A stretch of 64,000 bases of DNA from the NCBI RefSeq assembly GCF_001194135.2, contig NC_069005.1, positions 27,320,991 to 27,384,990 on the forward strand. Reading direction: 5' to 3'. The position numbers and the translations under genes were made by a program. Source of the DNA: Octopus bimaculoides. Lineage: Eukaryota. Every line of letters starts with the position of its first letter. Within the stretch, counting starts at the first letter, position 1. Below the pieces are notes generated by a model. The model saw only the letters and a program-made list of their open reading frames with translations. It was not told the origin of the DNA and made no database searches. Of the stretch, positions 28,062 through 62,647 are shown in pieces.

Positions 28062-28088
28062 TCATGTGTTGCGTATGGATGAGGACAG
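28062..28088 (-). CDS. Probable terminal coding exon LSSSIRNT*
   Basis: Acceptor ttttcatacag, phase 0, TGA at 28062-28064; short, so weak support. Confidence 0.45.
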   Translation of the reverse strand: MSSSIRNT

Positions 28089-31000
28089 CTGTATGAAAAT
28101 GTGTCAGACCCTAGCAGGCAAAGGTTGGTGACAGGAAGAACACCCAGCCATAGAAAATCAGCCTCAAATACACTCCAGCAGAAATAGCAGCCAATTCTCC
28201 CTCGAGTCACAGCCTACTATTTCAGACAATGACATGGACCACTGCATGGTGTCATGTATGTCTTAATGATAGACACAGTAGCCAAATTTCCCTCAGGCAG
28301 CAAACTACTCTCTTATGTATGTTTTTATAAATGCATGAACCAAACAAGTCAGACCTTAGTTTTTGGAGACTGTTCTCTATTAAAGCATATCCTTCTATCT
28401 TTCTGTTTCATATCCCTTTGCTACAAAACCGGGAAACCACTGGATACCTGAGTGATGTATATCATAATAATAATGATATGGTGCAGGCAGTTGGGTTTAA
28501 CTGAGTAGAAGTCTGATAGTGACTATAAGGCCTTGAAGGGATGTGGTAGACATATTTCTGACCATAGATCTGCTGGAATAAAGTATGATCAACACTTAAA
28601 TTACAATAACAGCAACAACTTCTTACCTGAGATTCAATAGTCATTACTTCATTAGTCATCTCTTCATATTGTTCTTTATCTTTGTTGGTCATCATCTCAT
28701 AGTCTTGTTTCCTTCCATTAGTCATCTCTTCACATTGTTGTTTATCTTCATCAGTCATCACCTCATATTCTTGTTTACCTCCATTAGTCATCGCTTCATA
28801 TCGTTGTTTATCTTCGTTAGTCATCTCTTCATACTGTTGTTTACCTCCATTAGTCATCACTTCATATCGTTGTTCACTTTCATTAGCCATCACCTCATAA
28901 TCTTGTTTATCTATATTAGTCATCTCTTGTTGTTTACCTTTGTTAGCCATCACCTCATATTGTTGTTTAACTTGAACACTTTTAACGACAGGATCGCGTG
29001 ATGGTGGTAACTTTTCTAACTCCATTTCATCATACGTCCAACTCGATTGACTTCCACAAATAAATGCTTCATAATTGTCATCTGTTGAATTACAGAAATA
29101 AACAAACACAAGTAAAGTACTGTACTATATGAGGTGTAGTCAAAATGTATCCGACCGTTGGCCAAAAAAACAAGTAATATTTAAAAACTCACCATTTTGA
29201 TTTAGTCTCCTTCAAAGTATTCGCCTTGGGAGTCTACACACTTCTTATTTATTTACTGCCCACAAGGGGCTAAACATAGAGGGGACAAACAAGGACAGAC
29301 AAAGGGATTAAGTCGATTACATCGACCCCCAGTGCGTAATTTATCGACCGTGAAAGGATGAACGGCAAAGTCGACCGCGGCAAAATTTGAACTCAGAACG
29401 TAGCGGCAGACGAAATACCGCAAAGCATTTCGCCCGGCATGCTAACGTTTCATTTCTTTATTGCCCACAAGGGGCTAAACATAGAGGGGACAAACAAGGA
29501 TAGACAAACAGATTAAGTCAATTACATCAACCCCAGTGTGAAACTGGTACTTAATTTATCAACCCTGAAAGGATGAAAGGCAAAGTTGACCTCGGCGGAA
29601 TTTGAACTCAGAACATAACGGCAGATGAAATATTGCTAAGCATTTCGCCCTGCCTTTCGAGTCTACACACTTCTGCCAGCGTTCCTGCCACTGCTGGAAA
29701 CATTTTTGGAAATCACTTTTTGGGATGCTGTAGAGGTGTGCTGTTGAATTTTGCTTAATGTCTGCTGTTGACTCAAATCTTCTCCCTTTGAGCTTTATTT
29801 ATTTATTTTTTTGAGCTTTGAGAATAGCCAAAGATCACACGGAGCCAAGTCTGGGGAGTAGGAAGCCTGACAAACAAGTGGTGTGTTTTGCTTGACGAAG
29901 AATGCTTGGACGACATGGGCGGAATGAGCAGGTGCATTGTCATGGTGGAGTTGCCAGTTCTTGGCTGCCTTCAGGCTGGGTTGTTTTTGCCACATAGCTT
30001 CACAAAGGCGACAAAGAATCCCTAGATAGTATTCTGTGTTAACTGTCTGCTCACACTGTGGCTCACTGTCTACTGAGGTGCAGCCATCTTTAAACTGGTT
30101 GCACCACTCCTTTATATGCATTTTTCTCATAGCATCTGACATTCAACCTTTGACATGACCCAGTTTACCTGCCATTATGATGATAACATCAAGCAATTTA
30201 GTTGTTGTAATGAACAGAAACTCTGACACAGTGCTACATACCTGTATCTGTGGTGACCCTAATAGCAGGGGGTACTGGTATCGTAGGGGGTAAAGGCAGG
30301 TCCAATGGGAGAGGAAACATCTTTTCAGTGTTGAAACTTCTTTTGGCTGCAGAGATCCTGTAGAATTGGAATAAAGATACAATTATTTAGAATTTCTAAA
30401 TGGTTTTCTTGTTGTTCAGCAAAAGCCCTCAGTGCCTTGTGAGTGCCTTAGGAAAAGAAAAGTCTAGCGGTATCAACCATTACTACAATTCAAGGAGCGG
30501 AATTACTCAGGTTGTCCAGTGCTCTCTTTAAAGAGCTCTACTTATACTGGCTACTCCACAACAGTAGTTGCTATCGAACATATATACATATGAGGCAGCT
30601 CTTGTGACATTACTCAACTAGTCAGAAATAGCAACTAAGTTTCTCACAAATCACTCCCAGGCATTTTCAATAAGGCAAAAAACACATTAGGCAATGTAAT
30701 CATAAATAACCTGAAAAATTGGGGATGGCCATACCTAGAATACCAACCTAGACAAAGGACCATAACCTATTCATATAAAGGACCAAAATCTACCCACACA
30801 AAAGACCAACACCTACCCAGAGAAAGGACCAAAAACTTACCTACATAAAGGACCAACATGTACCTAGAGAAAGGACTGAAACCTACCCACTCCAAGGACC
30901 AACACCTATCCACATAAGTAGTCAAAACCTGCCCACACGAAGGCCCAAAATCTATACATAGAAAAAAACCCCAATACCTACCCATGCAAAGGACCAACAC

Positions 31001-32421
31001 CTACCCTCACAAAGAACCAAAGAACATCTCATTACTTCATGGTGTTTATACTTACTTGCAGCAGACTATAATTGTTATAACAATGACCAACAGAATGAAA
31101 AAGGCCACAACAGGAACGCCAACCAGCAACAACAAATCTGGAGAAGAAGAAAAAAAAAAGATACAGAAAAACATACTTCCTCATCATTACTGAAAGCCTG
31201 TGTTCTATGCTGGCATAGGTTGGATGAGTTGACAGAGTCTGATGGGTTCAGTGTCTGCTTTGGCATGGTTTCTACAGCTGGATGCTCTTCCTAATGCCAA
31301 CCGCTTTAAAGTGTGTACTGGGTGCTTTTTTATTGTGCAACCAGCTCTATTCAGGTCATCATTGCAGAGCTCATGAGACTATGAGCCCTGAGGAAGGGGG
31401 GGTCGGCTTTATGCTAGGGGGACATAGAGTAAAAGTATCAGAGGTGGTGAGTGCGTTGCACTGCATGTTTTCTCACATTTAGTAAGGAAGGGAGACATGG
31501 TCAGTGTATGAAAAATACAAGCTGTATGGCGGTTGGTAATAGCGGCTGGAGGGTAATTTTCTAGGTGCAACCCCATGGTCATTTATGACTGAAGGGGGTC
31601 TTTACCCTTTTACCCTATGTACATATAATGGCATAGAGAGGGGAGGCTGGTATGCATGGGCAACTACCGGTCTTCCATAAACAACCTTNNNNNNNNNNNN
31701 NNNNNNNNNNNNNNNNNNNNNNNNNNNNNNNNNNNNNNNNNNNNNNNNNNNNNNNNNNNNNNNNNNNNNNNNNNNNNNNNNNNNNNNNNNNNNNNNNNNN
31801 NNNNNNNNNNNNNNNNNNNNNNNNNNNNNNNNNNNNNNNNNNNNNNNNNNNNNNNNNNNNNNNNNNNNNNNNNNNNNNNNNNNNNNNNNNNNNNNNNNNN
31901 NNNNNNNNNNNNNNNNNNNNNNNNNNNNNNNNNNNNNNNNNNNNNNNNNNNNNNNNNNNNNNNNNNNNNNNNNNNNNNNNNNNNNNNNNNNNNNNNNNNN
32001 NNNNNNNNNNNNNNNNNNNNNNNNNNNNNNNNNNNNNNNNNNNNNNNNNNNNNNNNNNNNNNNNNNNNNNNNNNNNNNNNNNNNNNNNNNNNNNNNNNNN
32101 NNNNNNNNNNNNNNNNNNNNNNNNNNNNNNNNNNNNNNNNNNNNNNNNNNNNNNNNNNNNNNNNNNNNNNNNNNNNNNNNNNNNNNNNNNNNNNNNNNNN
32201 NNNNNNNNNNNNNNNNNNNNNNNNNNNNNNNNNNNNNNNNNNNNNNNNNNNNNNNNNNNNNNNNNNNNNNNNNNNNNNNNNNNNNNNNNNNNNNNNNNNN
32301 NNNNNNNNNNNNNNNNNNNNNNNNNNNNNNNNNNNNNNNNNNNNNNNNNNNNNNNNNNNNNNNNNNNNNNNNNNNNNNNNNNNNNNNNNNNNNNNNNNNN
32401 NNNNNNNNNNNNNNNNNNNNN

Positions 32422-32460
<39 letters not shown>

Positions 32461-35400
32461 CAGACTTCACTCAGTTTCTGTCTACCAAATCCATTCACAA
32501 GGCTTTGGTCAGCCTGAGGCTGCAGTAAAAGACACTTGCCCAAGGTGCCACACAGTGAGACTGAACCCAGAACCATGTGGTTGGGAAGCAAGCTTCTTAC
32601 CACACAGCTGCATTGTGGAAGAATCAACCGTATATTATTGTAAGAATCTGCTAACAGAGAGTTTCACTGTACTGCACAACAACAGTACCTACTCACATCA
32701 AGGTGGACTGTGCCATCCCCTTGCATTTACAGGTGATAAGAATGTTTCACCTGCCTATAGTACATATCTGCAAGTAGATAAATTATGCCATGTGCCGATC
32801 CACAACAGCTCACACATCAAGGTGAACTGCCTTTTCTCCAGTTACAGTTAGTTACTCGACTGTGCCAAGGATATACCACACTAGTGATGTCTACTGGAGA
32901 TATAACACAATAGTGACATCTAGCAAGGATATTATACAGCAATGACATCTACTGAAAATATAACACAGTCATGATATCTAGGTCTACTGAGGAAAATATA
33001 TAGTTCATAGATGAGATCAAGATATTCTCCATATAGAATACACTTAGTTTAAATCAAGAGATTTAAACTTTAATAGGTATAGAAATAAATGTAGGGAAAA
33101 GCAATTTAGACAGGTCAATATATAAAGTATATTAAAAAATGTATATATATATATACACACGAAAAGGTCTGACTTGCACAGAATACAAGTGATATAAAGA
33201 ATTAAAGGGGTTGAAGTATTACAAAAGGATTACTACAGGAGGAAAATATGATGATGATAAAGAGTAATGTGACTTACTTTTCTGACAGTCAGGGCCTTCA
33301 AACCCAGTTTCACACAGGGTCTGTGGACAATAGCCAGTGATGAAATTACATCTGTCACTTTCCAGACAATGACATAGCTGCTGACATAACTTACCAAATG
33401 TACCAGGAAGACAAGCTAAGAAGAAAAGAAAATTAAAAAAATTACTTTCATCGTAACCAACAGAACGCCAGTTATAAATGTTGCCATTCTTCTGCACTGG
33501 AGGATCTTGGTAGACCACAAAGATCTTTAACGATGGTAAAGAATTAAGGATTCTGGCAAACCATGACAGACTTCAAAAATGAGAAACAGTGAAGTACCTT
33601 TGGCAGGCAAAGAAGATCTTTAAAATCAATGGCAGATATGAACTTAATGTTTGGCTAAATGGTTAGGGTATTCGACTAACAAATGTAAGGTTGTAAGTTT
33701 GATACCTGACTGGGTTGTGTGTTGTGTTCTTGAGCAAGACACTTTATTTCATGTTGCTCCAGTCTACTCAGCTCACTCAAGAATGAGTGGTACTTGTATT
33801 TCAAAGGGTTAGCTTTGTCATATTGCTTCATGCTGAATATCCCTGAGAACTACGTTAAAGGTGTTTGTGTGTCTGAGGAGAGCTCTACCACTTGCACATT
33901 AATTCCATGAGCATTAATTCCATGCTTCTGCTAATTGGATCAATTGGAACTCTTATCATAACTGACAATGTGTGTGTGTGTGTGTGTGTATCAAAGAACT
34001 GGTAAAGAAACAAACCTGTTTGGCAATCAGGTCCTGTATAACCTGGCTTGCAGTCATCATTCTCGCATAAACCAGTTTGTCTGTTGCAGAGGGTGTCATT
34101 TTCGCAATGACATGTACCATTACAGAGCACTCCAAAGGTACCATTGGTGCAAGCTGACAATAGAAAAGAAAACAGTTCTTAAATATTCAAATACCAAATC
34201 AAATGACATTTCTAACATTTCTGACAAAATCATAATGATATCTAATCCTTCTGATACCTAGCCATTGCAGACTGCCTCTTGTTACACGATATAAAATCCA
34301 TCTGTTTTTAAATATTTTACATATAGTTATGCTTGTTAAAGAAAACTACCTTTTTTCAAAGCTAGACTGTCTAACATATTTTCCAGTGTACAAATCAATG
34401 TAATATGTAGTGTAAACATTAAAAAATCGTCACTATCTTTCCAAACCCTGCTACATTTCACATGGAATTTTATGTTCCTCCAAAGTTGTCTTGGTGTATA
34501 AGCCAACCCTGCTTTTGGGGGCTGTGGGATGAAAAATTTGACTTCTATGCCAGAAAATATGGTTAAGTAGGTGTGCACGTGAAAGGTATAAACTGTTTCA
34601 CCTGATCAACATACTTTTAAAACAACTCGTTAATTATTATTTCTCAGCCATTCGAATACTTAAAATACTCTTCTTGGTCCCAACATCGTCGATAAACAAG
34701 AAATACATTGGAGACTCATTCAAGCATTCAAGACAAATGATAAAAAATTGTCAATAAATTCTAGCAGTCCATGCCATATATACACAGGCATGCAGGAAGT
34801 AAATAGACACCTTTAATTTTCAAAATTTCTGATCTAAGCATCTTAATATGTTTGCAGCTGTGTAGAATTTACAAAGTAATTATTCTTTTTCATTCCAGGT
34901 GCCATTATATTAAACATTTGCGAAGAGTAACCATGCCACACACAAAAAATTTAGCAGAACTGTCAGATTTTCAAAGAGGTCGTATTGCTGGGCAATCTGA
35001 GGCTGGTCTTAGCCAGGGAAAAATTGCCGAAAATCTTCAAATTCCTCTTGCTATTGTTAATAGAATTANNNNNNNNNNNNNNNNNNNNNNNNNNNNNNNN
35101 NNNNNNNNNNNNNNNNNNNNNNNNNNNNNNNNNNNNNNNNNNNNNNNNNNNNNNNNNNNNNNNNNNNNNNNNNNNNNNNNNNNNNNNNNNNNNNNNNNNN
35201 NNNNNNNNNNNNNNNNNNNNNNNNNNNNNNNNNNNNNNNNNNNNNNNNNNNNNNNNNNNNNNNNNNNNNNNNNNNNNNNNNNNNNNNNNNNNNNNNNNNN
35301 NNNNNNNNNNNNNNNNNNNNNNNNNNNNNNNNNNNNNNNNNNNNNNNNNNNNNNNNNNNNNNNNNNNNNNNNNNNNNNNNNNNNNNNNNNNNNNNNNNNN

Positions 35401-38400
35401 NNNNNNNNNNNNNNNNNNNNNNNNNNNNNNNNNNNNNNNNNNNNNNNNNNNNNNNNNNNNNNNNNNNNNNNNNNNNNNNNNNNNNNNNNNNNNNNNNNNN
35501 NNNNNNNNNNNNNNNNNNNNNNNNNNNNNNNNNNNNNNNNNNNNNNNNNNNNNNNNNNNNNNNNNNNNNNNNNNNNNNNNNNNNNNNNNNNNNNNNNNNN
35601 NNNNNNNNNNNNNNNNNNNNNNNNNNNNNNNNNNNNNNNNNNNNNNNNNNNNNNNNNNNNNNNNNNNNNNNNNNNNNNNNNNNNNNNNNNNNNNNNNNNN
35701 NNNNNNNNNNNNNNNNNNNNNNNNNNNNNNNNNNNNNNNNNNNNNNNNNNNNNNNNNNNNNNNNNNNNNNNNNNNNNNNNNNNNNNNNNNNNNNNNNNNN
35801 NNNNNNNNNNNNNNNNNNNNNNNNNNNNNNNNNNNNNNNNNNNNNNNNNNNNNNNNNNNNNNNNNNNNNNNNNNNNNNNNNNNNNNNNNNNNNNNNNNNN
35901 NNNNNNNNNNNNNNNNNNNNNNNNNNNNNNNNNNNNNNNNNNNNNNNNNNNNNNNNNNNNNNNNNNNNNNNNNNNNNNNNNNNNNNNNNNNNNNNNNNNN
36001 NNNNNNNNNNNNNNNNAAAGAGTAAATTTATTCAATAAAATTGCCACTGGCTTCAACCACGGCCTCCAGACAACTTCAGAATCTCCTGCAACTCTTCTGG
36101 ACAGTCTCCTTGTTTAAGTTGGTGAATGCTGCCATAATCCTTGCCTTCTGTTCATCTTTGGTGTTACAAGGACTTTTGTTGGTCTCTTGCACAACTGCAC
36201 CCCACACATAATAATCAAGGGTGTTGCAGTGTAGGGAGTTAGGTGGCCAAATGTTAGGGGTGATGTGATCGCAGAAATTGTCTGACAGCCATGACAGGGT
36301 TCTCCTGCTTGTGTGGCATGGTGCAGAATCCTGTTGTAAGACATAGGGCGTTACAGTAGCCACCCTCTTGACCTAGGGCAGTACTGCCTCCTCCAGGCAC
36401 TTGATGTAGGCCTCCATGTTGAGTCTGAGGCGATGTGAGAAGAAGAATAGAGGCATAATGTCACCATCACTAGTGATCACTCAAAAGACCATGATGTTGA
36501 CTGGATGTTTGATTTTTATCCCTCTCAGTACATGTCCTCAGATTGACACCCAAACACTCTCAGATGTTTATATTGGAGCTTCCGGCGTCAATGCCAAGCA
36601 GTACAGTGTCATTTCCATTTGCAGTTTGTTCAGCTTAAATCCCCTCAAGGCACTGCCGCAGCATTTCTGCAGCTCAGTGACTGAAACAAGTAAAAGATAT
36701 AAGATAAAGCTTTATTTGATTTAAAGACTAGTATTTGTAACAAGTATGGGCGATATAAAATTGCTCCTATTCTTCTTCTTACTTCTGTAAATGGTGGTGG
36801 TGGTGACTGGTTAAAACATGTAGCCAAAACCTCTAAAACAGGAAGTATGCACATAGACACATGATAACCTTGTGAGTTTTGATTTAACAAATTATTAAAT
36901 CAGTATTTGTATTGTGGGGACAGAGAGAGGGAGAAAGAAGGAGAGAGAAAGAACAAATATATTGATATGTTGATAATTTGATAATGTTTCACTGACCTTT
37001 TTGGCAGTCGTTACCTTCATAACCAGGAGCACATCCTTCACTCGAACACGTGCCAGATTGAGGATTGCATTTACTGTTATCAGCACAGTGACAAGTGTTG
37101 TTACACTCAGGGCCATACGTATTGTTCTTGCAAGCTTGAAAATCAAAATCAATTAAGTTTAATGAGTAATTCTATAAAATATATATTTCTTTAAAAAAAA
37201 ACAAAAAAAAAAACACCAGCATCCTCGTCATCATTTAACATCCATTTTCCATGCTGGCATCGGTTAGGCAGATTGGCAGCAGCTGATAAGATAGAGCAGG
37301 GGTTTTCAAACTTTTTGACTCGCGGACCCCTTTATATTTTAGGCTTTACCTTATAAAATAGGTTTATTGTCAATTAAAAGATTTCGATTAAGAAACATAT
37401 ATAAAATCAAATTGCCCATAAAAAGTATTTGCTGTCCACAGACCCCGTCTTGTCCTTGCGGACCCCCTGTGGTCTGCGGACCACAGTTTGAAAACCCCTG
37501 AGATAGAGGCCTACATCAAGCTCTAATGCAGTGCTTCTCAACCATTCTTTTTTTTTTATCTATGGACCCCTTTGATTACTATTTTATTTTGGTGGAGCCC
37601 TATAGCCTCTCGATGTTTAAAAACTAGTTTTATAGAAACTTCTTCCAAAATCCAAAATTCCTATTTTGTTTTTCAAACATAGACTTGTGTAGGTTGAACT
37701 ATGTAAAACATTAAATAAAGAGACTGAGTCATTCCTTGCAATAAATACATCAAAATCAAAAATTTTTTCATGGCTTGTTAATATTTTACTGTGTTCCCAA
37801 TTAACTAATTTGCATGTGTGGAACACCTAAAATCTTATTATGGAACCCCAGAGGACTTATGAACCCCAGTTGAGAACTACTGCTCTAATATCTGTTTTGG
37901 CATGTTTTCTATGGTTACATGTCTTTCCTTATGCCAACCACTTCAGAGAGTGTGCACTGGGCACTTTTTACATGGCCCTAGTGAGGTCACCAAATAACTC
38001 ACAGGACAAAACCCTCACCTCAACTGAGCAGTATCAAGGGAGGTAGCTTTATTCCAGTTGATGAGATGTTAAAGGATGGTAAAGGGATAAAAACAGGTGT
38101 CTTGCAGCAGAGGAGATAGATGGCTATTCTCCCAGTTGGAATCCTTTACTCACCTGATTGACAGTCTGGCTCAATGAAGCCAGCTTCACACTGACCATGG
38201 CCACCATCACAAAATCCATTTGTCCTGTTGCACTGTGTGACATTCTTGCAGTGACATCTTTCTTCACAGTTCACTCCAAACTGACCCTCTCCACACTCTG
38301 CAATGGAGAACATAACAGTTGGAACATAAGTTCAGCTTTTGTAGAAGTCGTTAAAACAGAGAAATCTAGCAACTGAACAAAATGCCAAAAAAATAAGGCA

Positions 38401-38435
38401 AACTAAAGATTTTAAATTCTGTCAAATAGCAGAAG

Positions 38436-38501
<66 letters not shown>

Positions 38502-41500
38502 GCCCGGATGCAGTACCAGGCAGTGCCTCATGGCTTTTGATCTTAACTGATTGGAAGTATTCTCACGTACATTGTTTTGTCTTGGTATAAAAGATGGGCT
38601 ACAGCAAATATTCTGCTCAAGACCACAGATCTGCTTGTCAGTGGTTTGATCTTAACCGGTTGAGCATGTCTCTTAGTGGCTGACAATATGTGCATCTCTG
38701 ATCATGAGCAGAAGTAGTAGGGGAGCATCATAGCCGTGTGTTGAAAGGAATCGACCTGAAGAAAATTTTAACTGGGACCCACCTGCAAGGTCATGCACTG
38801 TTAATCTTGGTACGAGATCACCATGTCACACATATATGGTTGTGATGCATGTTTTGGAATGGAATGAAAACATTCCTTTTTTTAAAACAACTTGTGAATG
38901 GAGATGAAAAATAGATTGTGTATGAAGACGTAGTACAAAAAAGATCCTGGAGTTTGCGTACATATGGTTGTGATGCATGTGCCTGGTGTACCCTTATCAA
39001 ATGAGTAGTCATGATGGGTATACTGGGATTCATATATTTTACCCCAGTGTCACTTTGATGGCATGCACTGCTCTCTCATTCAATAATAATAATAATATGA
39101 ATAAATAAAAAAGAAAAAACAAAAAAATATTAAAAAAAGCTGACCTTTCTGGCAGTTTTCCCCATGGTACCCTGGTGCACATCCAACAGCCGAACAAAAT
39201 CCAGATTCAGGGTCACATTGGTTATTATCAATGCAGTGGCACTGGTGTTTGCAATTTGGACCAAACTGACCTTTCTTGCACACTGAAAGAATGGTATTTT
39301 TAACACTGATTAACAGTTAGGATAGATGAAAATAACGAGGAAAATATCAACAATCAACTTCCACCATCAATTTCTCTTATCCACATCTTTCACGACCAAA
39401 TGTTAGTGGAAACTAAGTCACATGGAGCTGAATTAAACTGTTTTAAATAATATATGTAACTCCTACTAAATATGTTTGGTGCCTTTTTCTTTTGTTTGTC
39501 CACACACCTATCTGTATATATATATAATTAACATAATATGGTAAAAATTCGATATTAATTAATATCAATTTAATACCAGGAAACTAGCACATTAAAAGAA
39601 TAAGAAGGTTCTTGAAAAAATTTTTCGAGATCCTAAAAAAATTATAGTACTTGTGTATATAAGATTGACCAGTGACCGGTCTGTCAAAATGCTAGAAGAA
39701 GCTCACTTAAAAAATTCTCAAATACGGATTCAGCGGAGCAAAAACAGGCGGGCTAGACCAGTGAAAATTGTACATACCTCGATTATCTGCAGACTATAGT
39801 TTCAAAATCAACACTTTCAAAATAAAAATGTCTACAATTTTCACTGGTCTAGCCCGCCTGTTTTTGCTCCGCTGAATCCGTATTTGAGAATTTTTTAAGT
39901 GAGCTTCTTCTAGCAGTTTGACAGACCGGTCACTGGTCAATCTTATATACACATGTATATATATCTATATATATATATATATATGTGTATGTACATACAT
40001 ACACACAAACACATATATATACATATATATACGTATATATACATATATGATGGGGTGCTGAAAAATTTAAGGGTATCTCAAAAGATTTGGTTGGAGGCAC
40101 AACCTTCTGAATTCTTTTACAGGGCTTAGAAAAAAACTGAAGGACCACTGTAATAAGTGTGTGAATCTGAGAGGGGAATATGTTGAATAAAATCATAATT
40201 AACTGATCCTCCCATATTTTCTTTTACTCAAAGCCAGAATCTTTTCAATATCCCTTGTATGTGTGTGTGCACGTGCGTGTATGTATTACTGTTTCCTTGC
40301 CTTGGCACCTATGACAGTTGTAAATGAATGTCACTCTCATACAAGATGTGTCCTTCACTCCAAATCTTCCATGAAAACATCCTGCATCATAGGGAAATAT
40401 TCTTTTCTACTCTAGTCACCAGGCCTGAAATTTTGGGGATGGGGCCAGTCGATTAGATCGACCCCAGTATGCAAGGATGGAAGGCAGAGTCAACCTCAGC
40501 AGATTTTGAACTCAGAACGTAAAGACAGATGAAACACCGCTAAGCATTTTGCCTGGATTGCCAACGTTTCTGCCAGCTTGTTGCCTTTGTTATAGGGAAA
40601 TATTACCTTGGAAATGGGTGAAGGTTGACAACAGGAAGATCATCTGGCTGTAGAAAATCTGCTTTGGCAAAATACCTTCTGACCCATGACGGCATGGAAA
40701 AGTGGACATAAAAATGACAATGGTGATGATGACGAAAGGCCACACACAAAGATCTATATAAAGGCTACATACAAAGATCACACCCAAGGACATCATGTAA
40801 AGGTTACATACAAAGACTGCATGCAATGATGAATTGAACTGAACTGAAATGGAGAGAGAAGAACAGTTAATATTTCCACTCACTTTTCTGACAAGTAGAC
40901 CCAGTGTAACCATCTTGGCAAATGCCGTCATAACACGAACCGTATATCTGATTACACTGGGATATATTCATGCAATGACATTGTTCGTGGCAGTTAAGAC
41001 CAAACGTTCCAGCTGTACACACTGAAAAGATACAATAATAATCTTTAACTGGTAATAGATGAGGAACAGATGTTTCATTAATAACAACAGCTATCAGTTA
41101 TAATTTCTTACCTAGGCTGAAGGTAAGAATTTAAGTGGATGGGGGAAAATTATGGATTAAATCAATCCCAGTATTTGACTGATATTGTATCAACTTCTGA
41201 AGGCTGAAAGGCAAAGCTGACATTAGCATGATGCAAAGAGCCAGAACAAAGTCCGCAGAATAAGACCCACAGATGCTCTAATAATTCTACCAAACCAGCG
41301 CCTTATATAACAATAATAATAATCCTTTCTACTAAAGGCACAAAACCTGAAATTTAGTTGGGGCAGGGGCTATTGGGTCTCATTGACACCAGTGTTTCAC
41401 TGGTACTTAATTTATTGACCCCGAAAGGATGAAACGCAAAGTCTACCTTGGTGGAATTTGAACTCAGAGTGTAGCGGCAGATGAAATACCGCTAAGCATT

Positions 41501-42828
41501 TCACCCAGCATGCTAACGATTCTACCAGCTCACCACCACCTTACATAATAATAATAATAATAATAATAATGGTTTCAGATTTTGCCACAAGGGCAGTAAT
41601 TTTGAGGGAGGGGATGAGTTGATTATGTCAACCCCAGTGCTCAACTGGTACTTATTTTATTGATCCCGAAAGGATGAAAGCAAAGTTGACCTCAACGGAA
41701 TTTGAACTCAGAACTAAGTAACGGCTGAAATACCACTAAGCATTTCATCCAGCGTGCTAACGATTCTGCCAGCTCGTTGCCTTAATTATAATAATAATTA
41801 TAATAATAATTATAATACTGGTTTCAAATTTTAGCACTAGGCCAGTAATTTCAGTGTGAGGTTAAGTTGATTACATTGACCTGAGGAAGAGGTGGACGAA
41901 GAAGAAAGCCTTTATATGTATGTTCACGTATACCTATTGAATACGCATATATTAGTTTACTTGGCAAGTTCTGAGCATCTTTTAATATGCAAAAAGGGAT
42001 ATAGATAATTGACCTTGCAATAAATCTTATTCAATGAAATAATTCCCATTATTATTGACTTTTGTCTATTAGGCAATTTGAATATTCCATCAGCATAAAA
42101 TTTGAATGGTTTTGAAGAAAAAAAAGTTATGTTGATGCATTCTGACTCCATCGTTAAATATTTTTCCTGGCAGTGAGTTCTTTAGAGACAAAAACAAGTG
42201 ATAGATGCCTTGATGAGTTTTAGATGGTATATCATGGGATCAATTTGTTTGACTAAAACTCAGCAAGGCTGCAGTCCAATGATTGAAACAAGTAAATGAT
42301 GAACAATAACTGAAAGTAAAATCTCGAATTAAGAATTCAGACCAAACTTCATACAAACCTGACTGACAGTTGTCTCCTTGGAAACCAGCAGCACATCCGA
42401 CACTGGAGCACACTCCAGATTTAGTGTCACATCGGTTATTGTCGGCACAATGGCACAAATGTTTACAGTTAGGACCAAAGTATCCTCTTTTACATTCTGA
42501 AATACAAATATTCACCGTCAAAACTGATATCAATGGTTGTTATTTAATGACTAAGATAGACTGCAGAGATATGTGATATCATATACTTGCACGTTGAGAG
42601 TGTTCTGTAATAGCTGAGGTGGAGTGAGATATATACAATATACAATACATGAAGCTGTATGGTGTATATCATATATGTGAAACTGCATGGTATATAGTTA
42701 CTTGTGAAGAAATGTAGAATATGTGAGAAGATGAGTTTGTAGCTGACTTACTGTTCTGACTATATTCCCATCAACTGGTTCATATTTTGAATTGCTTTTA
42801 ACTGAGAAAGAGCTTATATAATGGATGC

Positions 42829-42874
<46 letters not shown>

Positions 42875-45800
42875 AATTATATTATTTTATAGATATTGTT
42901 ATTAATTATAGGCACAGGAGTGGCTGTGTGGTAAGTAGCTTGCTTACCAACCACATGGTTCCGGGTTCAGTCCGACTGCGTGGCACCTTGGGCAAGTGTT
43001 TTCTAACAATTCTGCCAGTGTGTCATAGAAACCAGAAATATTCAGAACACCTCATGTAACAAGGGACTTACCAGTTTGACAATCCGTCCCAGTGTAACCT
43101 GCTTCACAGATATTGTTATGGCAAGAACCATCAATTCCATTACACAGAGTGTTATTACTGCAGTGACACTTCCCTTCGCAGTTCATACCAAACGTACCAG
43201 CTGGACACACTGTAATATAGAAAGAAGTGAGGATGATAATGATAATGATAATAATAATCCTTTCTACTAAAGGTACAAGGCCTGAAATTTTGGAGGAGGG
43301 GACTAGATTACATTGACCCCCAGTGTTTCACTGGTACTTAATTTATCAACCCTGAAAGGGAATTTGAACTCAGAACATAGTGGCAGATGAAATACCGCTA
43401 AGCATTTCACCTGGCATGCTAATGGTTCTGCCAGCTCAGTACCTTAATAATACAAATTATAATAATAATAATAATAATAATAATGATGATAATAATAACA
43501 ACAATGATAATGATGATGATGATGCAGCACCTCAATGCCATGATGCAGTACCAGGTAGTGGCTCTCATGGCTTCTGATCTTAATTGATTGGAAGTGTTAT
43601 CATGTACATTGTTTTGTCTTGGCATAAAAGATGGTCTACAGCAGATATTCTGCTCAACACCACAGATTTGCTTGTCAGTTGCTTGACCTTAACCAATTGA
43701 GCACATCCCTTAGTGTGCTGACAATATGTGCATCTCTGATCATGAGCAGAAGTAGTGGGGGAGCATCATAGTCATGTGTTGAGAGGAATTCTTTGGGGTT
43801 TGGATAATTCACCTTTAGAAACATGGGTGTTTCATTCAATGCTGCTAATCGCTTTGCCTGGCATGCCAATGATCCTGTCAGCTTGCTGGCTTAAAAAAGG
43901 TGGGGCATAATAATGATAATGATAACAATGGTGCAAGGCCAGCAATTTCGGGGAGAGAATAAGTTGGTTACATTGACCTGAGTGCTCGACTGCTCCTTAT
44001 TTTAGCCCCTGAAAAGAGGAAAGGCAAAGTTGACCTTGGCAGCATTTGAACTCAGAACATGAGGACGTGAAATGCCGCTAAGCAATTTTTCCAGCATGCT
44101 AATGATTCTGCCAGCTCACCGCCTTGCTGTTATACTCATAATATCCTTTCTATCATAGGCATGAATGAGGCCTGGATTTTTACGGGGGGGTGGACAACCG
44201 ATTACATTGACCCCAGTACATGGCGATGATGATGATGATGAAAGGGATGACAATGATGACGAACAATATGATGATGATGACAATAACCATGGTGATGATA
44301 ATGAATGCAATAACGGCAATGACAATGATGAAGATGACAATTATGATGTTGATGACGATAATCATGATGATGATTGCACATGAGTGTGATGATGAAGATG
44401 ACAAAAATATGATGAGGATGGTGATAATATTTTAGATATTTATCATCTTAATGATTATAAACATTACTTTTAACGATGATAATAGCAAACAATAATGATT
44501 GTGATGAGGGTGGTGAGGCCGATAACATTGATGATACAAATAGAAATACTGATGCTGATGATGGTGAAGATGGTGATGGTGGTGGTCATGGTGATGGATA
44601 GTGATGATGGTAGTGGTGGAGGTGGCAATGAAACAATTGCTTTTTATATTTTGCTAACTACAGACCTGTTTGACAGTTGTCTCCTTTGAAACCGGCAGCA
44701 CACCCAACACTGGAACATACTCCTGATGCTGTGTCACAGTGCTTGCTGTCTGCACAATGGCACTGAGATTTACAGTTGGTGCCAAAGTATCCTTTCTGGC
44801 ATTCTGAAATTCAGAAAAGGTAATATATTAATAACATGTATATGGACAATACGAGGTCTACACCTTACATAGTAATTTGGCCATCATCATCATCATCATC
44901 GTTTAACATCCACTTATCATGCAGGCATGGGTTGGACGGTTTGACTGAGGACTGGCAAGCCAGGAGGCAGCACCAGGCTATAATCTGATCTGGCAAGGTT
45001 TCTACAGCTGGATGTCCTTCCTAATGCCAACCACTCCGACATTGACCACGTTTGGATGGTGCTTTTTGTGCCACCAACACGGGAACCAGTCAGGGGGCAC
45101 CAACATCGTTATTCTAGGGAAAGGCAAAGGCTGATACAGCTTAGCACCAGTGATGTTGCAACTCATTTCTAAAGCTGAGTGAAATGGAACAGCGTGAGAT
45201 AGTGTCTTGCTCAAGAACACAACACACAGCCTGGTCCAGGAATTGAACTCACTACCTCAACACAAACAAACATCTGAGATCTGTGCCACCCTATATCACA
45301 TACACCTCCCCTACCCTCCACAAACCCCCATGTTTATATAAAACCTACACACCTCAATATTGCCTACTTAATTACATCACATGCTGAAGGAATGCAAATA
45401 AAAATGTCATCTTAATGCGCCCACTTCAACTTACCTGTCTGACAATCAAGGCCCATATATCCAGGTAAACAGATACCATCATGGCACATACCATTAGTGG
45501 TGTTACACTGGCTTTTGTTGAGACAATGGCAGTTGTATTGACAATTTTCACCAAAGGTTCCAGGAGAACACACTGAAATAAAACAGGAATATTTATAAAA
45601 TAATCAGGCATGGCTGTGTGGTAAGAAGCTTGTTTTCCAACCACATGATTCTGGGTTCAGTCCCACTGTGTGGCACTTTGGGCAAGTGTCTTCTACAATA
45701 GCCTTGGATTTGGTAGATGGAAACTGCAAGAAGCCCATTGTGTGTGTATGTGAGTGTGTGTGTGTGTGTGCATGTATGTGTGCGTCTGTGACTTAGTGGT

Positions 45801-48800
45801 GTACCTGTAACTTAGAAGACGGAAAATAATGTTTTTATTTTCTTTTTGTTTGCTTCCATTTTATTTATATTTGAAAAGCTTTCTCCTTTGTTTCTGTTTT
45901 TTTTTTTTTTTAATTGCAAAGAGTTTGATATCATTAAAATTAATTTTACGTAAAACTTCTGCTTCCAATACTTAGAAGAGACTAGACATTACAAATATTA
46001 TTTTAGCAGGCTTAAAGTGATTTCTTTCATGCTGCAAACCCATTTTCTTTTCTGTTGTGCCCCTGTCTCTTGATACCCTAAACACGTGCTTATTTTGCTT
46101 ACTGGTTAATCCAGGGCTGCATGGCAAGATATGGGAACACATGGGATTATGAAACAGGGAGAGAACATTGCAAGGATTTAAGAATTATGAGTTTTGAAAG
46201 TTGTTTGAGGAATTACAGAATTACATATTCCGAAAGTTATTTTAAATCAAATTACAGCATGATAGTATTACGATTTAGATGAATGTCTTTATAATATCAC
46301 TTACATTAAATTTTAAATATTTGTCCCGTAAGTCAGGACAGGAGCGGTGAATGTATTAGCAACAAAATCAGAAATACAGACCTGACTGGCAGCTGTCCCC
46401 TTTGAAACCAGCAGCACATCCTACGCTAGAACATACTCCAGATTTAAAGTTACAATGGTCATTGTCAGCACAGTGGCATAAATATTTGCAGTTCAAACCA
46501 AAATATCCCTTTTTACATTCTGAAATAGAAAATTATAATAACTTCAAATATTAATGAAAGATGATGAAGATACGGTTGCATAACGAAATCCCATGTACCT
46601 ACAAATCGTTGTAGTGGTGTTGGCATAGGAATGTGCAGATAAAGAATTTGGAGACAGTCAGAGTGTGACAGGGTAGTTAGGCTGAGGGCTTGACTGCAAT
46701 ATAGCAAAAGTGTCATTTATCTCTGCTTCTGTTCCACAAACCTAGGCATAGGAGTGGCTGTGTGGTAAGTAGCTTGCTTACAAACCACATGGTTCCGGGT
46801 TCAGTCCGACTGCGTGGCACCTTGGGCAAGTGTCTTCTACTATAGCCTCGGGCCGACCAAAGCCTTGTGAGTGGATTTGGTAGACGGAAACTGAAAGAAG
46901 CCCGTCGTATATATGTATGTATATATATANNNNNNNNNNNNNNNNNNNNNNNNNNNNNNNNNNNNNNNNNNNNNNNNNNNNNNNNNNNNNNNNNNNNNNN
47001 NNNNNNNNNNNNNNNNNNNNNNNNNCGGGAAAGGAAAGAAAGAGAATTTGACATTTCGAGTGAAGCTCTTCGTCGGAAACATAGGAAAGTCCAAAGAAGG
47101 GAAGACAGAGGAAGAAAAAAATCGCCAACGATATTCACGAGTGTGTGTATATGTTTGTCCCCGCAACATTGCTTGACAACCGATGCTGGTGTGTTTAGGT
47201 CCCCGTAAGTCCCCGTAACTTAGCGGTTCGGCAAAAGAGACCAATAGAATAAGTACTAGGCTTCCAAAGAATAAGTCCAGGGGCTGATTTGCTCGACTAA
47301 AGGCGGTGCTCCAGCATGGCCGCAGTCAAATAACTGAAACAAGTATAAGAGTAAAAGAGTAAAGAGTAAACCTAGCTGGCAGATGAACAAGGGAACTGAT
47401 TTTACAAGTCCCTTTTGCAGACTACCTTGTTGATGAATGACAATGATGTTATTATCATCTGGACAGCACTAGGCTTACAATTAATAAGTCCTGGGTCAAT
47501 TTCTTTAACTAAAAAACCTTTTAATGTAGTGCTCCAGCATGGTCACAGTCTAATGACTGAAACAACTAAAAGAATGAAAGAATAAAAGAATAAAAGAATA
47601 AAAGAATCATTTGGAATTTATCAAGAACGCTTGAGATACAATTGATCTAAAGATCTTATTTATTATTCTCCATCTGCCCATTTACATGAAATCAACCCCA
47701 GGACTTATTCTTTTTAAACCTAGCACTTATTCTGTCAGTCTCTTTTGCCAAACCGCTAAGTTATGGGAATGTAAACACACCAGCATCGGTTGTCAAGCAA
47801 TGGTGGAGGAACGAACAGACAGACAGCCCCTTGACTGGCTCCTGTGCCGGTGGCACATAAAAAGCACCATCCAAACGTGATCGTTGCCAGGCCTGCCTTA
47901 CTGGCTTCTGTGCTGGTGGCACATAAAAGCACCCGCTATACTCTTGCAGGCTTTGGTCAGCCGAGGCTTTAGTAGAGGACACTACACTTGCCCAAAGTGC
48001 CATGCAGTGGGACTGAACTTGGAACCATGTGGTTGGTAAGCAAGCTACTTACCAAACAGCCACACCCACGCCTATATTTGAGTGTACACATGCACGACGC
48101 CTAAAGTTTAGTATACTATTTTTGTTCGTGGATAATTTTGCTTTATGGAAGTTTAACCAGACGAAGAAAGGTAAAAGAAAGGAAACATTGTATTTAATTG
48201 ACCCTGAAAGGATGAAAGGCAAAGTTGACCTCGGCGGAATTTGAACTCAGAACGTAGCGGCAGACAAAATACCGCTAAGCATTTCGCCTGGCATGCTAAC
48301 GTTTCTCCCAGCTCGCCGCCTTTTCAATTCTTCTTTCAGTTTCCGTCTACCAAATTCACTCACAAGGTCTCGGGTGACCTGAGGTTGTAGTAGAAGACAC
48401 TTGCTCAAAGTGCCAAACAGTGGGACTGAACCTGGAACCATGTGGTTGGGAAGTGAGCTTCTTACCACACAGCCACTCCTGCGTCATACCTTCTTATCAC
48501 ACAGCCACGCCTGTATATATTCTAAATATAAACTTATATTGTTAAGGGTTTGCACAACCGTATAATAAAATAAACACGACTGCATAATAATATACCAAAA
48601 GCAATTGTTTTTTTTCGTTTCCTTGACTAATCATTCAACTATGAAATAGGAGCAGTGTTTGGTCTGTTTTCAAATAAGTTCACCTAGAGGGTGGTGGGGA
48701 GATAGGGGGAGAGAGAGAGGGAGAGGGAGAGTACAAAGCTTGCTTCCCAATCATGGGGTCTCGGGTACAGTCCCATTGCACAGCACCTTTCGACAAGAAT

Positions 48801-50644
48801 CTTTTACTTAGGCCTTGGGCCAACAAAAACCTTCTAAACAGTAGACAGAAACTGATTTGGGTGGCTTCCTTGAAAAAACTGTTCTGTTCTATATTGTATG
48901 GCTATATAAATGTGTATCAACATCATCGTCATTTAACATCCGTTGGATGCTTTGACTAAAAGCTGGTAAGTTGGGGAGCTGCACCAGGTTCCAGTCTGAT
49001 TTGGCACGATTTCTACAGCTGGAAGCCCTTCCTAACGCCAGCCACTTAACAGAGCGTGTTGGGTGCATTTTATGTGCCACTGATATGAGTGCCATTGATG
49101 TGACACCGGCGCTGGCCATGACTATGGTCTCACTTGGCTTGACAGGTCTTCTTCAATTTTTATTGCCAAATAAATAATGTAGACGGAGGAAGTCTAACGC
49201 AGAAGAAGCTAGAAAGTTCTGGAGTGATATTAATCAGAATGGGAATGCAGCACGACTAAAGAAAGTGAGGAAAGAAGTAGTTAGTGGGAAGTAGCTTGAT
49301 CTAAAACTAATTAGTGCATTAATGAGTAAAATGTTAAGAAGAATACTGAATTGGAATGGCCCAGGACCAGATTTTTTTCAATTTCAATTTAGTAGCTTAC
49401 AGGAGGGTCTGAGGGAACAACTTCAGGATTGCTTGAATGGATGATTGCCATCTTGGATGACTACAGAGAGAACAGTACTCCTTATGAAAGGCAAAAGAAA
49501 GGGCATTGTAGCTAGTAACATACCTGTTTGATAGTCATTTTGTATAAAGCCATTAAAGCATAGGTGTACTGGCACATATTAAACTAATAAACAAATTCAA
49601 ATAACATACCCTTTTGACAGTCAATTCCTGTATAGCCAGTTTCACAGCTGCTCTTACCACAAAACCCATTGGTTTTATTACAGTGTTCATTCTGCACACA
49701 ATGACAAACTTTCTGACAGTTTGACCCAAAACTGTTGGCTGGACAAGCTGGAAAGATGACATGGAAAATAGCAAGTTATAAATTTGAAAACAAGAAAAAA
49801 ATGATTTCATAATTATATAGCAAACCCTTTTTGATAAATTACTCAGGTTCAGCATTAAATATAAAAGAAGGTAAATCCATTTATAACAGGGTTCATATTT
49901 TCCTGAATTGAACTGTTATATTCATTGACCCAGTGCAGGTGCATGGCTCAGTGGTTAGAGCATAGGGCTTACAATCATGACGTGAGCTCGATTCCCAGAC
50001 TGGGTTGTGTGTTGGGTTCTTGACAAGACACTTTATTTTTACAATGCTCCAGTTCACTCAGCTGTAGAAATGAGTTGTGATATCACTGGTGTCGAGTTAT
50101 ATCGGCCTTTGTCTTTCCCTTGGACAACATCGGTGGCATGGAAGAGGGGATGCTGATATGCATGGGCGACTGCTGGTCTTCCACAAACAACCTTGCCCAA
50201 ACTTGTGCCTCGGAGGGGAATTTTCTTGGTGCAATCCCTCAGTCATTTGTGAATGAAGGGGAGTCTTTTACATCATAGGGGATACCCTCAGTAATAACAG
50301 GTATACTGTGAAAAAGTCAACATTTACAAACAGGACAATTTGTAAACAAACCAACACTTTTGCATAAGGGGCAAACTGGGAACAAATCAATACATACAGG
50401 TTTTGCCTATCAACTATTAAAATGTTGCAAGTTTGTAAAATAGAACTACTCACAAGTTTGGCAAGTGTGTCCAGTATAACCTGGAAGGCACTGGTTATTT
50501 GGACAGTGACCAGTTTTGGGATCACATTTCTGACTGTCCTTACATTTGCATGGATTTGCACAGCGTAGACCAAAGTAGCCAGACTTACAGACTGAAAAAT
50601 AAACAAAAATATCATATTCAACATTATTTTTATAAGATACATAC

Positions 50645-50713
<69 letters not shown>

Positions 50714-53700
50714 AAAATAAGAGGAATGACCAGCAAAAATGGACTCCTATATGCACCGGTTTTAATTGATTAATATCAATTTCTACCCTCATTAATAAAT
50801 TTTTTATATATCATCATCATTATCATCATCATCGTTTAACGTCCGCTTTCCATGCTAGCATGGGTTGGACGATTTGACTGAGGACTGGTGAAACCGGATG
50901 GCAACACCAGGCTCCAATCTAATTTAGCAGAGTTTCTACAGCTGGATGCCCTTCCTAACGCCAACCACTCATATATATATACATATATATATATAAATAA
51001 TAATAAAGGAGTTAATATAACCAAAAGGATCGATTCTTGAGGAGTCTGCATACCTTCACAGTGGTTTTTTTCTGCTATTTTGGTGATGATTTTTTGAGTT
51101 AACGTACCAGTTATTTTTGTTGGTAGTTAATTTATAATATATTGATATATATATATATATATATATAGTATGTTTATGGCGTACCAAACCACAAATAAAT
51201 TAGTTGAACTGAATGTTTGTGGGGTGGTGGTGGAGGGAGGGATATATTTTCTCAGCTTTGGTAATGTCGTTACCTGTTATACTCTGTGATTCTCTGATCA
51301 AGAAAGGCTGTGGCCACCACATGATTTAACTTTTATACATAAAAGGGGCTTGTGCTAGTTACATATAAAAGGAACCCAGTACACTCTGTGGAGTGGTTGG
51401 CATTAGGAAGGGCATCCAGCTGTAGAAGCCAAGCCAAGCCAAACCAGACTGGAGCAGCTCTCTGGCTTACCAGTTCCCGTCACACTGTCTAATCCATGCT
51501 AGCATGGAAAAACAGATGTGCTAAATGATGATGGTGATGATGATGATATATTACAGAAGACCTGCACATCTAAGTGAAAAAAAACGAGGCTCTAAAGATA
51601 TGTTGTTCACGTCTATGCTCCTGCACACAATCTTTCTCTGATGGTTTTCTTTCCCTACAACCCATCTTCCAAACACCCCAACTCCCCACCTGCGTTCACC
51701 TCTCACTGCTTTCTCCTCCCTTCCATGTGCCACTCCCCCTTCACACTCACCAAAGCTTAAGTGCTCACTCACCCTACCCAATCCTCTGTACACTTCACAT
51801 AATCATCTCTCTGCAACTTGAGGGTTCACCCTAACACATTCTTCGCCATCTCTTTCTCTCATTCTCCATCTGGAGTAGCCATGAATCTCCTCAAATGCAA
51901 GACCCCTGTTTCTGTCCCCTCTGTCATACTCTAACCTTTCATCACCTGGCATACAGTCACCTCCCTCAGTATTACTTGCTCTCTCTCTCTCTCTCAGTTG
52001 AGGAGGTTGTGTGCTGCAAATTACTTGATCTCACTGGTGCTGGTGCCATGTAAAAAGTTCCCAGCATGCTCTGTAAAGTGGTTGGCATTAGGAAGGGCAT
52101 TCAACCATAGAAATCATCCCACAGCAGACATTAGCACTTGGAATTTTCTGGCTTGTCAGCTCCTGTCAAACCGTCCAACACATGCCAGCATCAGAAAGGG
52201 TAAATACAAAATATTTAGAGTGTCATGGTGCAAAAACTAACTTGCTGATTCTTAATAAAAGCTATTTTTAACCCATTAGTGTTTAAAATGGCCGTATCCA
52301 GCTCAAATATTCAAGTTATTTTATGTTCAAAACTAGCAAGATTCAGCCTCTTACACCTGCCCTGCAATGTCATTAAATTAAAATTAAAATGCATCATCAA
52401 AATCTCAAAGCTAGAAGATAATGCGTGATTAATTCGAAACAAGGTGAATAAATAAGCATTACATTTGACAGAGTAATCTGAATGTTAAAGGGTTTAACTG
52501 GCCATATCTGGCCTCTCACACCTACCCTACAATGTCATTCTAAAAATAAACAATCACATAAATAGTGTGAGGCTGCTTAGGCTTCTTTCAGTTTCCATCT
52601 ATCATATCCATTCACAAGGCTTTGGTCAGTCCAGGGTTATAGTTGCTGCACAGTGGGAATGAACCCAAGACCACATGGTCGGGAAGTGAACTTCTGACCA
52701 CACAGCCACACCTGTATCTATATTAGGATTTGATTAGGACTTAAGTTACACACTGTGCTTTCAAAAAAAAGTATCTGACCTTTGGGCATAAAAAAACCCC
52801 CAATTTTCTACATTTCACAAATTTTCTACTAATCCCCTTCAAAACACTCCTCTTGAGAGTTCACACACTTCTCCCAGTGTTTCTGCCATGGCTGGTAACA
52901 CCCTTGGAACACCTTCCTTCGAATGCTATGCAACTCTGCTGTTGCTTTTCTCATAATTCCCCCCGTTGAGGTCTAAATCACTTCCCTTTCAGTGTGGTTT
53001 CCAGTTTAGGGAAGAGCCAGAATTTACACAGTGCCAAACTGGGAGAGTAGCGAGCCTGTCAAACAAGTGAGGTGTTGTTCTTAACCAGAAAAGCTTGGAT
53101 TATGAAATCTGTTTAAAAAGCATGCAAACCTTTGTTCACTCTCTGCATGCACAACTCCCCTGTTAATATGGAATGAACTGATCCTGTGCTTATTCCAACT
53201 TTGTGAGCAATTTCCTAGATTATTACAAATGGTTTTCTATGAAGGTTCACTGAACCTTCTCAATCAGTTCCTTGTTTTGGCTTGTGGATGGCCTGACTGA
53301 ATGAGCCTGGTTCTCCATGGGGTGCAACCATGTTTGAAGCAGTTATACCACTTCTTGATCTAAGTTTTGCTCACAGAATCATCGCCAAAGGCCAGCTAAA
53401 TCTTCTGGACTTGAGCATCACCAAGCTTTAGACAAAACTTAATGTGACATTTCTGCTTGATGCGTTCAGTCATCTTGCGTGAAGACAAAAGTTTGACAAG
53501 CAGACACAACATATCTGTACTCAAGGTGTAACAGCTGGGAACTGACACAACCCACCAGACAGGTACACTTGCACTAATTCTTCTGTAACAAACATGTCAA
53601 AAACAAGAAAAACAACATCTGTCCTTACAATAGAAAGTTCACATCACTCTCTAATTACAGCAATGTCGAAGCAAATAGCACAATGGCCAGGCTAAAGCTA

Positions 53701-56206: not shown

Positions 56207-56270
<64 letters not shown>

Positions 56271-62608: not shown

Positions 62609-62647
<39 letters not shown>

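Follow-up and report, generated by a model that had tools for sequence, protein, structure and literature searches.

A minisatellite-encoded array of YExM motifs in the tail of an octopus MEGF10/PEAR1/Draper-type receptor: a candidate docking array for class IA PI3K

The stretch of Octopus bimaculoides DNA analyzed here, 64,000 nucleotides (nt) long (NCBI RefSeq assembly GCF_001194135.2, contig NC_069005.1, forward-strand positions 27,320,991 to 27,384,990; this whole stretch is called the window below, and positions are given in its numbering), contains the 3' portion of a gene that is expressed and encodes a single-pass protein whose ectodomain is an array of epidermal growth factor (EGF)-like repeats (Table 1). 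Downstream of the transmembrane (TM) helix, the gene encodes a proline-rich juxtamembrane segment and then a tail in which a coding minisatellite forms ten tandem units. Eight of these units read YE[VEAM]M, and with the TYDEM that lies upstream of them the tail holds nine YxxM motifs in 126 residues. We propose from these motifs that the array would act, when phosphorylated, as a docking array for the p85 regulatory subunit of class IA phosphoinositide 3-kinase (PI3K) in a receptor of the MEGF10/PEAR1/Draper kind, a reading to which we give slightly better than even chances.

The TM, proline-rich, and tail exons have good splice signals and translate in a single reading frame. The joint 31056/30357, which skips 698 nt, is found in RNA contigs of runs X2-X5 and X14 and is also crossed by one raw RNA-seq read of a 2026 run (X20), the joint 30242/29081 is given by contig loose ends together with contiguous record coordinates, and the contigs use the splice donor at 28627. 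The three junctions that an earlier note had predicted from the DNA letters are thus all real. The contigs behind this gene model come from four runs of three studies, and the junctions are also supported in a sister species. Contigs of 3609, 3611, 3503, and 1987 nt, one from each of four runs, align exactly to 28627-29085 with zero differences; RNA-contig depth is 0 in both introns that flank the tail exon, and every sampled word of the tail exon was found in at least 12 public RNA runs of one organism. The raw-read runs X20 and X21 contribute an exon depth of only ~1x at 6% sampling, and their one supporting junction read is silent on strand and isoforms. In the RNA contigs, a further ~147 nt separate the last EGF exon from the TM exon (record positions 2515 to 2663 in X4, with the same 147-nt offset in X5 and 144 nt in the sister species), and no exon of this length was found before the TM exon in the assembled bases of the window. 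The hidden exon probably lies in an N gap, where it would encode a further EGF repeat or a stalk.

Tandem Repeats Finder (TRF) places the array at 28647-28973, with a period of 33, 10.1 copies, and 73% matches, and additionally reports super-repeats of periods 66 and 99. In our unit alignment, nine units measure 33 bp and one measures 27 bp, the consensus is x-K-Q-x-Y-E-x-M-T-N-x, and the order of the units is YEVM, a unit without tyrosine, YEVM, YEVM, YEEM, YEAM, YEVM, CEEM, YEMM, and YEEM. The CEEM unit (28723-28734) carries TGT in place of TAT, and the unit without tyrosine (28912-28938) has lost two codons, which leaves the nine residues GKQQ--EMTNI. Successive tyrosines of the tail are 13, 25, 20, 11, 11, 11, 11, 22, and 11 residues apart. 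Given the 10 Tyr and 15 Met among the 203 known tail residues, about 0.7 YxxM motifs would be expected by chance, against the nine observed, and in a scan of all frames of the window the remaining YxxM clusters fell in simple repeats, none of them within a coding exon. NPxY is absent from the 203 known residues, DDNYEAF being without the proline, and while the spacing of the units fits an ITAM (immunoreceptor tyrosine-based activation motif; YxxL/I-6-8-YxxL/I), with seven residues between motifs, the +3 residue is Met in every unit. The known tail is acidic, with 41 E+D to 23 K+R and a net charge of about -18, and Gly-Gly is present in three of the ten units. Translation bears out what the earlier note had said of the number of motifs, their prevailing 11-residue spacing, their derivation from ten 33-bp units, and the lack of NPxY, and both TRF and the unit alignment support its view that a 33-bp unit multiplied within an exon to give the array. 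Two of its details need correction: the tyrosine is indeed gone from the Y-less unit, but through a loss of 6 nt (two codons) and not of 3 nt, and the residue before each tyrosine, which it had described as acidic or Gln, is Arg in two units.

Variation among the units is strongly position specific. Columns K2, Q3, Y5, E6, M8, T9, and N10 are nearly invariant, and columns 1, 4, 7, and 11 show four or five different residues each. The glutamate at position 6 is encoded by GAG four times and by GAA five times, with no replacement, the asparagine at position 10 by AAC three times and by AAT six times, and the methionine at position 8 by ATG in 10/10 units. The pairwise ratio of replacement to silent differences within the array (pN/pS) is 0.15 for the core columns and 3.65 for the spacers. 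As the two classes were defined from the array itself, an independent test was needed, and the orthologue of the sister species, on a contig of 3220 nt, provided one. Its tail exon differs at 28 of 459 nt, has no indel, and keeps all ten units; the 27 changes that were listed translate into 18 replacement and 6 silent codon changes, and the ratio of replacement to silent substitution rates (dN/dS) is 0.54 for the tail exon overall. Between the species, 4 of 68 core codons and 12 of 40 spacer codons have changed (Fisher p=0.0013), with a dN/dS of 0.10 in the core and 3.6 in the spacers, ratios that come from small numbers. Every array tyrosine is retained together with its +3 methionine, even where the residues between them have changed (YEVM to YEEM, YEAM to YQEM, and YEMM to YEVM), and the sole methionine lost between the species is that of the Y-less unit. 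The cysteine of the CEEM unit is common to both species, and this loss of a tyrosine therefore predates their split.

To judge from these sequences, the motif core is under purifying selection and the four spacer positions change freely. The proline-rich exon is constrained as well, with 0 of 115 nt differing between the species where the neighboring exons differ by ~5% (P about 0.003). In the two EGF exons compared (window 33278-34153), the listed changes comprise seven replacements and one silent change, all cysteines being kept; fast-evolving recognition surfaces typically look like this, which hints at rapid or diversifying evolution on the outside of the ectodomain. A constrained core and proline-rich segment next to fast-changing spacers and EGF surfaces argue against a neutral repeat.

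The ectodomain can be placed with little difficulty. Each EGF-like repeat occupies one phase 1-1 exon of 138 nt (144 nt in one case) and follows the pattern C..G.FG.NC...CHC.....C....G.C....C..GY.G..C, the last two of these exons being contiguous in RNA contigs. The 21 repeats are a minimum, for at its 5' end the gene extends beyond position 64000 of the window, where an N-terminal EMI domain of the kind that marks MEGF10/PEAR1-type receptors would be encoded. Pfam recognizes EGF_STAB1-2 in 11 stretches (E=1.4e-34). When 13 repeats with the TM and juxtamembrane segments were used as the query, the best matches, with identities of 29-45%, were to PEAR1 (E=2e-131), MEGF10, MEGF11, Draper, and CED-1-like proteins. 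Molluscan proteins reached the highest ectodomain identities, and the solved structures matched (PDB) were the Tie2 EGF region and SCARF1. By similarity, the ectodomain is a plain EGF array of the MEGF10/MEGF11/PEAR1/Draper/CED-1 type. The earlier note, which could match this architecture to no described receptor, therefore overstated the case, the ectodomain being of a known type and the vertebrate tails of this family already holding one conserved Y-x-E-M each.

The tail behaves differently in searches. A word-indexed search of 5.8 billion proteins with the tail (217 aa), or with three EGF repeats plus the tail, gave no match, and HMMER with the tail exon against 1.84 billion representatives gave 10 matches, all of them unrelated periodic low-complexity proteins; by itself, the tail is thus without a homologue in these two very large libraries. 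Neither library returned a self match, and therefore no predicted protein in them contains the tail exon. Among the relatives matched, each vertebrate tail of PEAR1, MEGF10, or MEGF11 contains a single NPxY and a single ES(S/G)Y[MV]EMK, the 52 motifs of the latter kind reading YMEM in 28 cases and YVEM in 24. Among the 120 closest relatives, the maximum is 2 YxxM per 150 residues, compared with 9 in 126 here, and none has a regular tandem array of tyrosine motifs, while the tails of some invertebrate relatives are rich in tyrosine (the Logan-derived protein P0032 has 14 motifs of the YxxL/I/V type). In the literature, we found nothing relevant on tandem YxxM arrays in invertebrate receptors. 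Since the vertebrate members have a single motif and no relative has more than 2, the tail is best viewed as an amplified family-type motif and not a new architecture; its novelty lies in copy number and tandem layout, not in kind. The upstream YDEM might correspond to the one YxEM found in vertebrate MEGF10/11/PEAR1, a homology that we infer, and what YDEM and the eight YExM share with the vertebrate Y-[MV]-E-M is the motif class. An unrelated, receptor-like library protein, P0004, has a TM helix followed by tandem GGAA(N/D)YESLTTDDKDYTALSE(V/I)SK with ITAM-like YxxL pairs, which suggests that tandem amplification of receptor-tail tyrosine motifs occurs in other lineages.

PEAR1 (also MEGF12 or Jedi-1) is the closest of the known systems, sharing with our protein an MEGF-type EGF array (as the best match, at 33% identity), a single TM helix, a tail that is rich in proline and, as far as known here, free of a kinase domain, and a Y-x-E-M in that tail. 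PEAR1, however, has one YMEM/YVEM and an NPxY, whereas here nine YxxM are present, eight of them in tandem, the known part lacks NPxY, and the two tails have no detectable sequence similarity. MEGF10, Draper, and CED-1 resemble it in the type of ectodomain and in having tails whose tyrosine motifs are written by Src-family kinases and read by SH2 or PTB proteins (PMC8092387); their motifs, in contrast, are ITAMs (YxxL/I) for Syk/Shark and NPxY for GULP/CED-6, neither of which occurs in the known tail here. As PI3K amplifiers with several YxxM in one cytoplasmic region, ErbB3, CD19, IRS, and Gab proteins offer a further likeness. ERBB3 has seven consensus p85 sites (PMC8555822), and adding the p85-recruiting segment of CD19 to a synthetic phagocytic receptor raises whole-cell engulfment (PMC6008046). 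The sequences and domains of these proteins are nevertheless unrelated to ours, their motifs are scattered, and none stands behind an EGF-repeat ectodomain. Finally, molluscan receptors that join an EGF array to a protein tyrosine phosphatase (PTP), such as P0019 of Acanthosepion pharaonis and P0024 of Haliotis rubra, have the same EGF repeat type (43% identity), a TM helix, and a juxtamembrane stretch of ~100 residues; they differ in their PF00102 domain, which was not found in the window, the C-terminal exon or exons lying outside its assembled bases.

These comparisons suggest a mechanism that would follow the PEAR1 route, from Src-family kinase through p85 to AKT, with the docking site amplified. 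Ligand would cluster the receptor, a kinase of the Src-family type would phosphorylate the tyrosines of the array, and each pY-E-x-M would dock an SH2 protein, most likely the regulatory subunit of class IA PI3K. The pYXXM motif is the ligand of both SH2 domains of this subunit, both of which are needed for full and efficient activation, and the standard bis-phosphorylated activator is PDGFR-beta 735-767, in which pY740 and pY751 are 11 residues apart (bioRxiv 10.1101/704106; PMC7458397). Because the tyrosines of neighboring units have this same 11-residue spacing, one p85 could bind two of them through its two SH2 domains, and several PI3K molecules could assemble per receptor. The outcome would be a strong local phosphatidylinositol 3,4,5-trisphosphate (PIP3) signal that would serve engulfment or adhesion. 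The PxxP-rich segment, which is invariant, may tether an SH3-bearing kinase or adaptor near the array, and putative palmitoylation of the juxtamembrane CC pair is possible; an analogy of the tail with adaptors of the LAT/PAG kind is speculation. In its fullest form, our proposal is that of an engulfment or adhesion receptor with a built-in multivalent PI3K scaffold, derived by expansion of the family YxEM, with an 11-residue register tuned to the p85 SH2 pair and with spacers that are relaxed or diversifying. To this combined version we attach somewhat less than even confidence.

Several observations weigh against p85 docking. It is the motif itself that leads us to name p85 as the probable reader. 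Within the units, the K-Q-x at positions -1 to -3 is not an optimal Src substrate context, and pY-E-E/V-M resembles pYEEI, the optimum of Src-family SH2 domains. The tail is known from only two closely related species, the constraint test covers one species pair with column classes taken from the same array, and the C terminus is known to 10 codons past 28627, so that another domain may follow. Among the relatives, ligated Draper clusters recruit Shark, Crk, and p85, but the p85 N-SH2 domain did not bind the Draper tail directly (PMC6219719). A literature search for the PEAR1 tyrosine that binds p85 gave only papers on FAK, and we do not claim the YMEM tyrosine as a p85 site.

The protein does not end at 28627, and what follows bears on whether the receptor is an enzyme. 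According to RNA loose ends, the 30 transcript letters past the donor are ATTATGTTAAAGAACCAAGATGCACATGAC, the exon spliced to it begins ATTATGTTAAAGAACC, and the protein continues from ...ESQ into IMLKNQDAHD. Neither these 30 nt nor either of their 16-nt halves occurs anywhere in the window, with mismatches allowed, which places the terminal exon or exons either in an N gap that lies between satellite and tail exon or beyond the window. The sequence between the tail exon and the neighboring gene is mostly satellite and N gaps, so that the assembled bases of the window lack the gene's 3' end. RNA depth at 28052-28209, considered as a 3' exon, was rejected, as it belongs to different contigs and overlaps a plus-strand open reading frame (ORF; 27982-28128), by eye a reverse-transcriptase remnant of a long interspersed nuclear element and without a match in Pfam. 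The array could be a juxtamembrane linker or regulatory segment of a receptor-type PTP or another enzyme whose catalytic exons lie downstream, as the donor spliced to an exon that is not in the window and a sister-species contig that extends 864 nt past the tail exon would allow. Molluscan relatives do fuse the same EGF-repeat type to PF00102 PTP domains (P0019, P0024, P0026, and P0041), including the cuttlefish protein at 43% identity. Yet tblastn searches in which the queries were the cytoplasmic regions of five such PTPs and of two relatives with a kinase found nothing in the assembled bases of the window (the best E for the five PTP-bearing tails was not below 1.8), and most molluscan MEGF10-like relatives have short, noncatalytic tails. 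The contigs of three runs stop 294-296 nt after the tail exon; coinciding at about +295 nt, these ends leave room for fewer than 100 codons, too few for a PTP if the transcript stops there. Moreover, over the opening 30 nt of the next exon the species differ at 4 positions and 3 of 10 residues, far more than a catalytic domain would tolerate. We therefore rate a hidden catalytic domain as distinctly improbable. The description of the receptor as noncatalytic is nonetheless provisional: no kinase or PTP exon is present in the assembled bases, but the transcript runs on for a further 294 nt or more (864 nt in the sister species) outside them, and related molluscan receptors are PTPs.

A different reader for the same array is unlikely in our view but is the alternative with the most in its favor. 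The phosphotyrosines might be bound mainly by Src-family SH2 domains, in a processive self-amplification of the kind proposed for Draper, or by the tandem SH2 domains of Syk/Shark instead of p85. The conserved +1 Glu and the Glu or Val at +2 resemble the Src SH2 optimum already mentioned, and YxxM-x7-YxxM has the geometry of an ITAM. MEGF10, Jedi-1, and Draper signal through Syk/Shark once a Src-family kinase has phosphorylated them (PMC8092387, PMC6219719). Against these readers speaks the +3 Met, which none of the ten units lacks and which the sister species keeps after every tyrosine of the array, for an ITAM needs Leu or Ile at this position, and a Met there is what determines p85 binding (bioRxiv 10.1101/704106 for pYXXM). 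Alternatively, the 11-residue repeat might be structural, a long helix or hendecad coiled coil with a hydrophobic Tyr/Met stripe that serves as a spacer or oligomerization module and not for phosphorylation; we give this slim chances. Three turns of a helix with 3.67 residues per turn make up the period of 11, the motif has conserved T-N and K-Q on its flanks, and AlphaFold without an alignment draws a single helix over residues 31-150 with a predicted local distance difference test score (pLDDT) of 70-88 in the best model, a helix that, if real, would be unsuited to SH2 docking and would count against our proposal too. The predicted template modeling score (pTM) is only 0.25, however, and the other four models have pLDDT values of 47-56, too weak to separate helix from disorder, single-sequence helix predictions being unreliable for E/K/Q-rich repeats. 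The Gly-Gly pairs, the presence of just two hydrophobic positions per 11 residues, and the negative charge of the tail, which argues against binding to the inner leaflet, also oppose a structural role. An 11-mer amphipathic helix of the apolipoprotein/synuclein/perilipin type, which has a wide hydrophobic face bordered by basic residues, was considered and rejected: the period agrees, but the units have no hydrophobic residues besides Tyr and Met, and the tail, as far as known, is strongly acidic. Least probable of the four, we believe, is a functionless, neutral coding minisatellite within a disordered tail, its YxxM count a by-product of expansion. A tail without a homologue outside two close species, the overall dN/dS of the exon, and the presence of one unit without Tyr and another with Cys in its place would all suit such an origin. 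It is difficult to reconcile, however, with position-specific constraint seen within the array and, independently, between species, with synonymous variation at E+1 and N+5 almost free of replacement, or with units that are only 73% alike and yet have the same number and frame in both species.

If the array docks PI3K, the strength of signaling would be tunable by motif copy number through replication slippage in an exon, with no new domain required, and the locus would offer a natural dose series for the p85 sites that a phagocytic or adhesion receptor can use. The engineered "tandem" phagocytic receptor with a p85-recruiting module (PMC6008046) would then have a parallel in nature, and the number of usable p85 sites bears on how synthetic engulfment receptors are designed. 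The array would, in addition, open a first way into signaling by the greatly expanded molluscan MEGF10-like families, the tails of which are almost entirely uncharacterized. If the array is not phosphorylated, what remains is a lineage-specific repeat in a fast-evolving receptor.

Table 1. Features of the receptor gene, in window coordinates
Feature	Position	Strand	Basis or remark
Ectodomain, 21 single-exon EGF-like repeats	33278..63425	-	Pattern and splice-site scan
EGF exons, first group	63425-63288, 63057-62920, 61924-61787, 60981-60844, 59352-59215, 57396-57259, 56635-56498	-	Pattern and splice-site scan
EGF exons, second group	54429-54292, 50591-50454, 49747-49610, 46519-46382, 45572-45435, 44803-44666, 43209-43072	-	Pattern and splice-site scan
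EGF exons, third group	42496-42359, 41021-40884, 39282-39145, 38297-38154, 37134-36997, 34153-34016, 33415-33278	-	Pattern and splice-site scan
147-nt exon (49 codons), probable N-gap location	31689..32421	-	RNA-contig offsets; placement inferred
TM exon	31056..31137	-	Translation, RNA-contig junctions
Juxtamembrane proline-rich exon, three PxxP	30242..30357	-	Translation, junctions
Tail exon, 455 nt, 151 codons: DNYEAF, TYDEM, YExM array	28627..29081	-	RNA contigs
Solitary YDEM motif	29023..29034	-	13 residues past the Tyr of DNYEAF; same in sister species
Coding minisatellite, ten units	28648..28971	-	TRF, unit alignment

The sequence around these exons is rich in repeats. Intron 1 holds, between the TM and proline-rich exons, a 23-bp minisatellite of 11.6 copies (30752-31021), and intron 2 holds a 215-bp interspersed-repeat unit in 1.9 tandem copies as well as a remnant of a DDE transposase ORF on the minus strand (29830-30140), which looks mariner/Tc1-like by eye and which Pfam assigns only weakly to DDE_3 (E=0.0016, short of the cut-off). 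Short interspersed repeats at 29247-29650, 31250-31310, 32470-32610, and 33710-33770 reach RNA-contig depths of 10^4 to 10^5 and belong to a very abundant, transcribed family resembling short interspersed nuclear elements. On the plus strand, an ORF segment at 7038-7445 matches short-chain dehydrogenases (adh_short, E=3e-9), a class-level match that is compatible with the convergent HSDL1-like neighbor proposed in the earlier note. Between 14000 and 27307 extends a satellite of ~13 kb, of the (GTTC)n/(GTAC)n type, with strong AT skew and several N runs, the strand polarity of which flips near 21500-22500.

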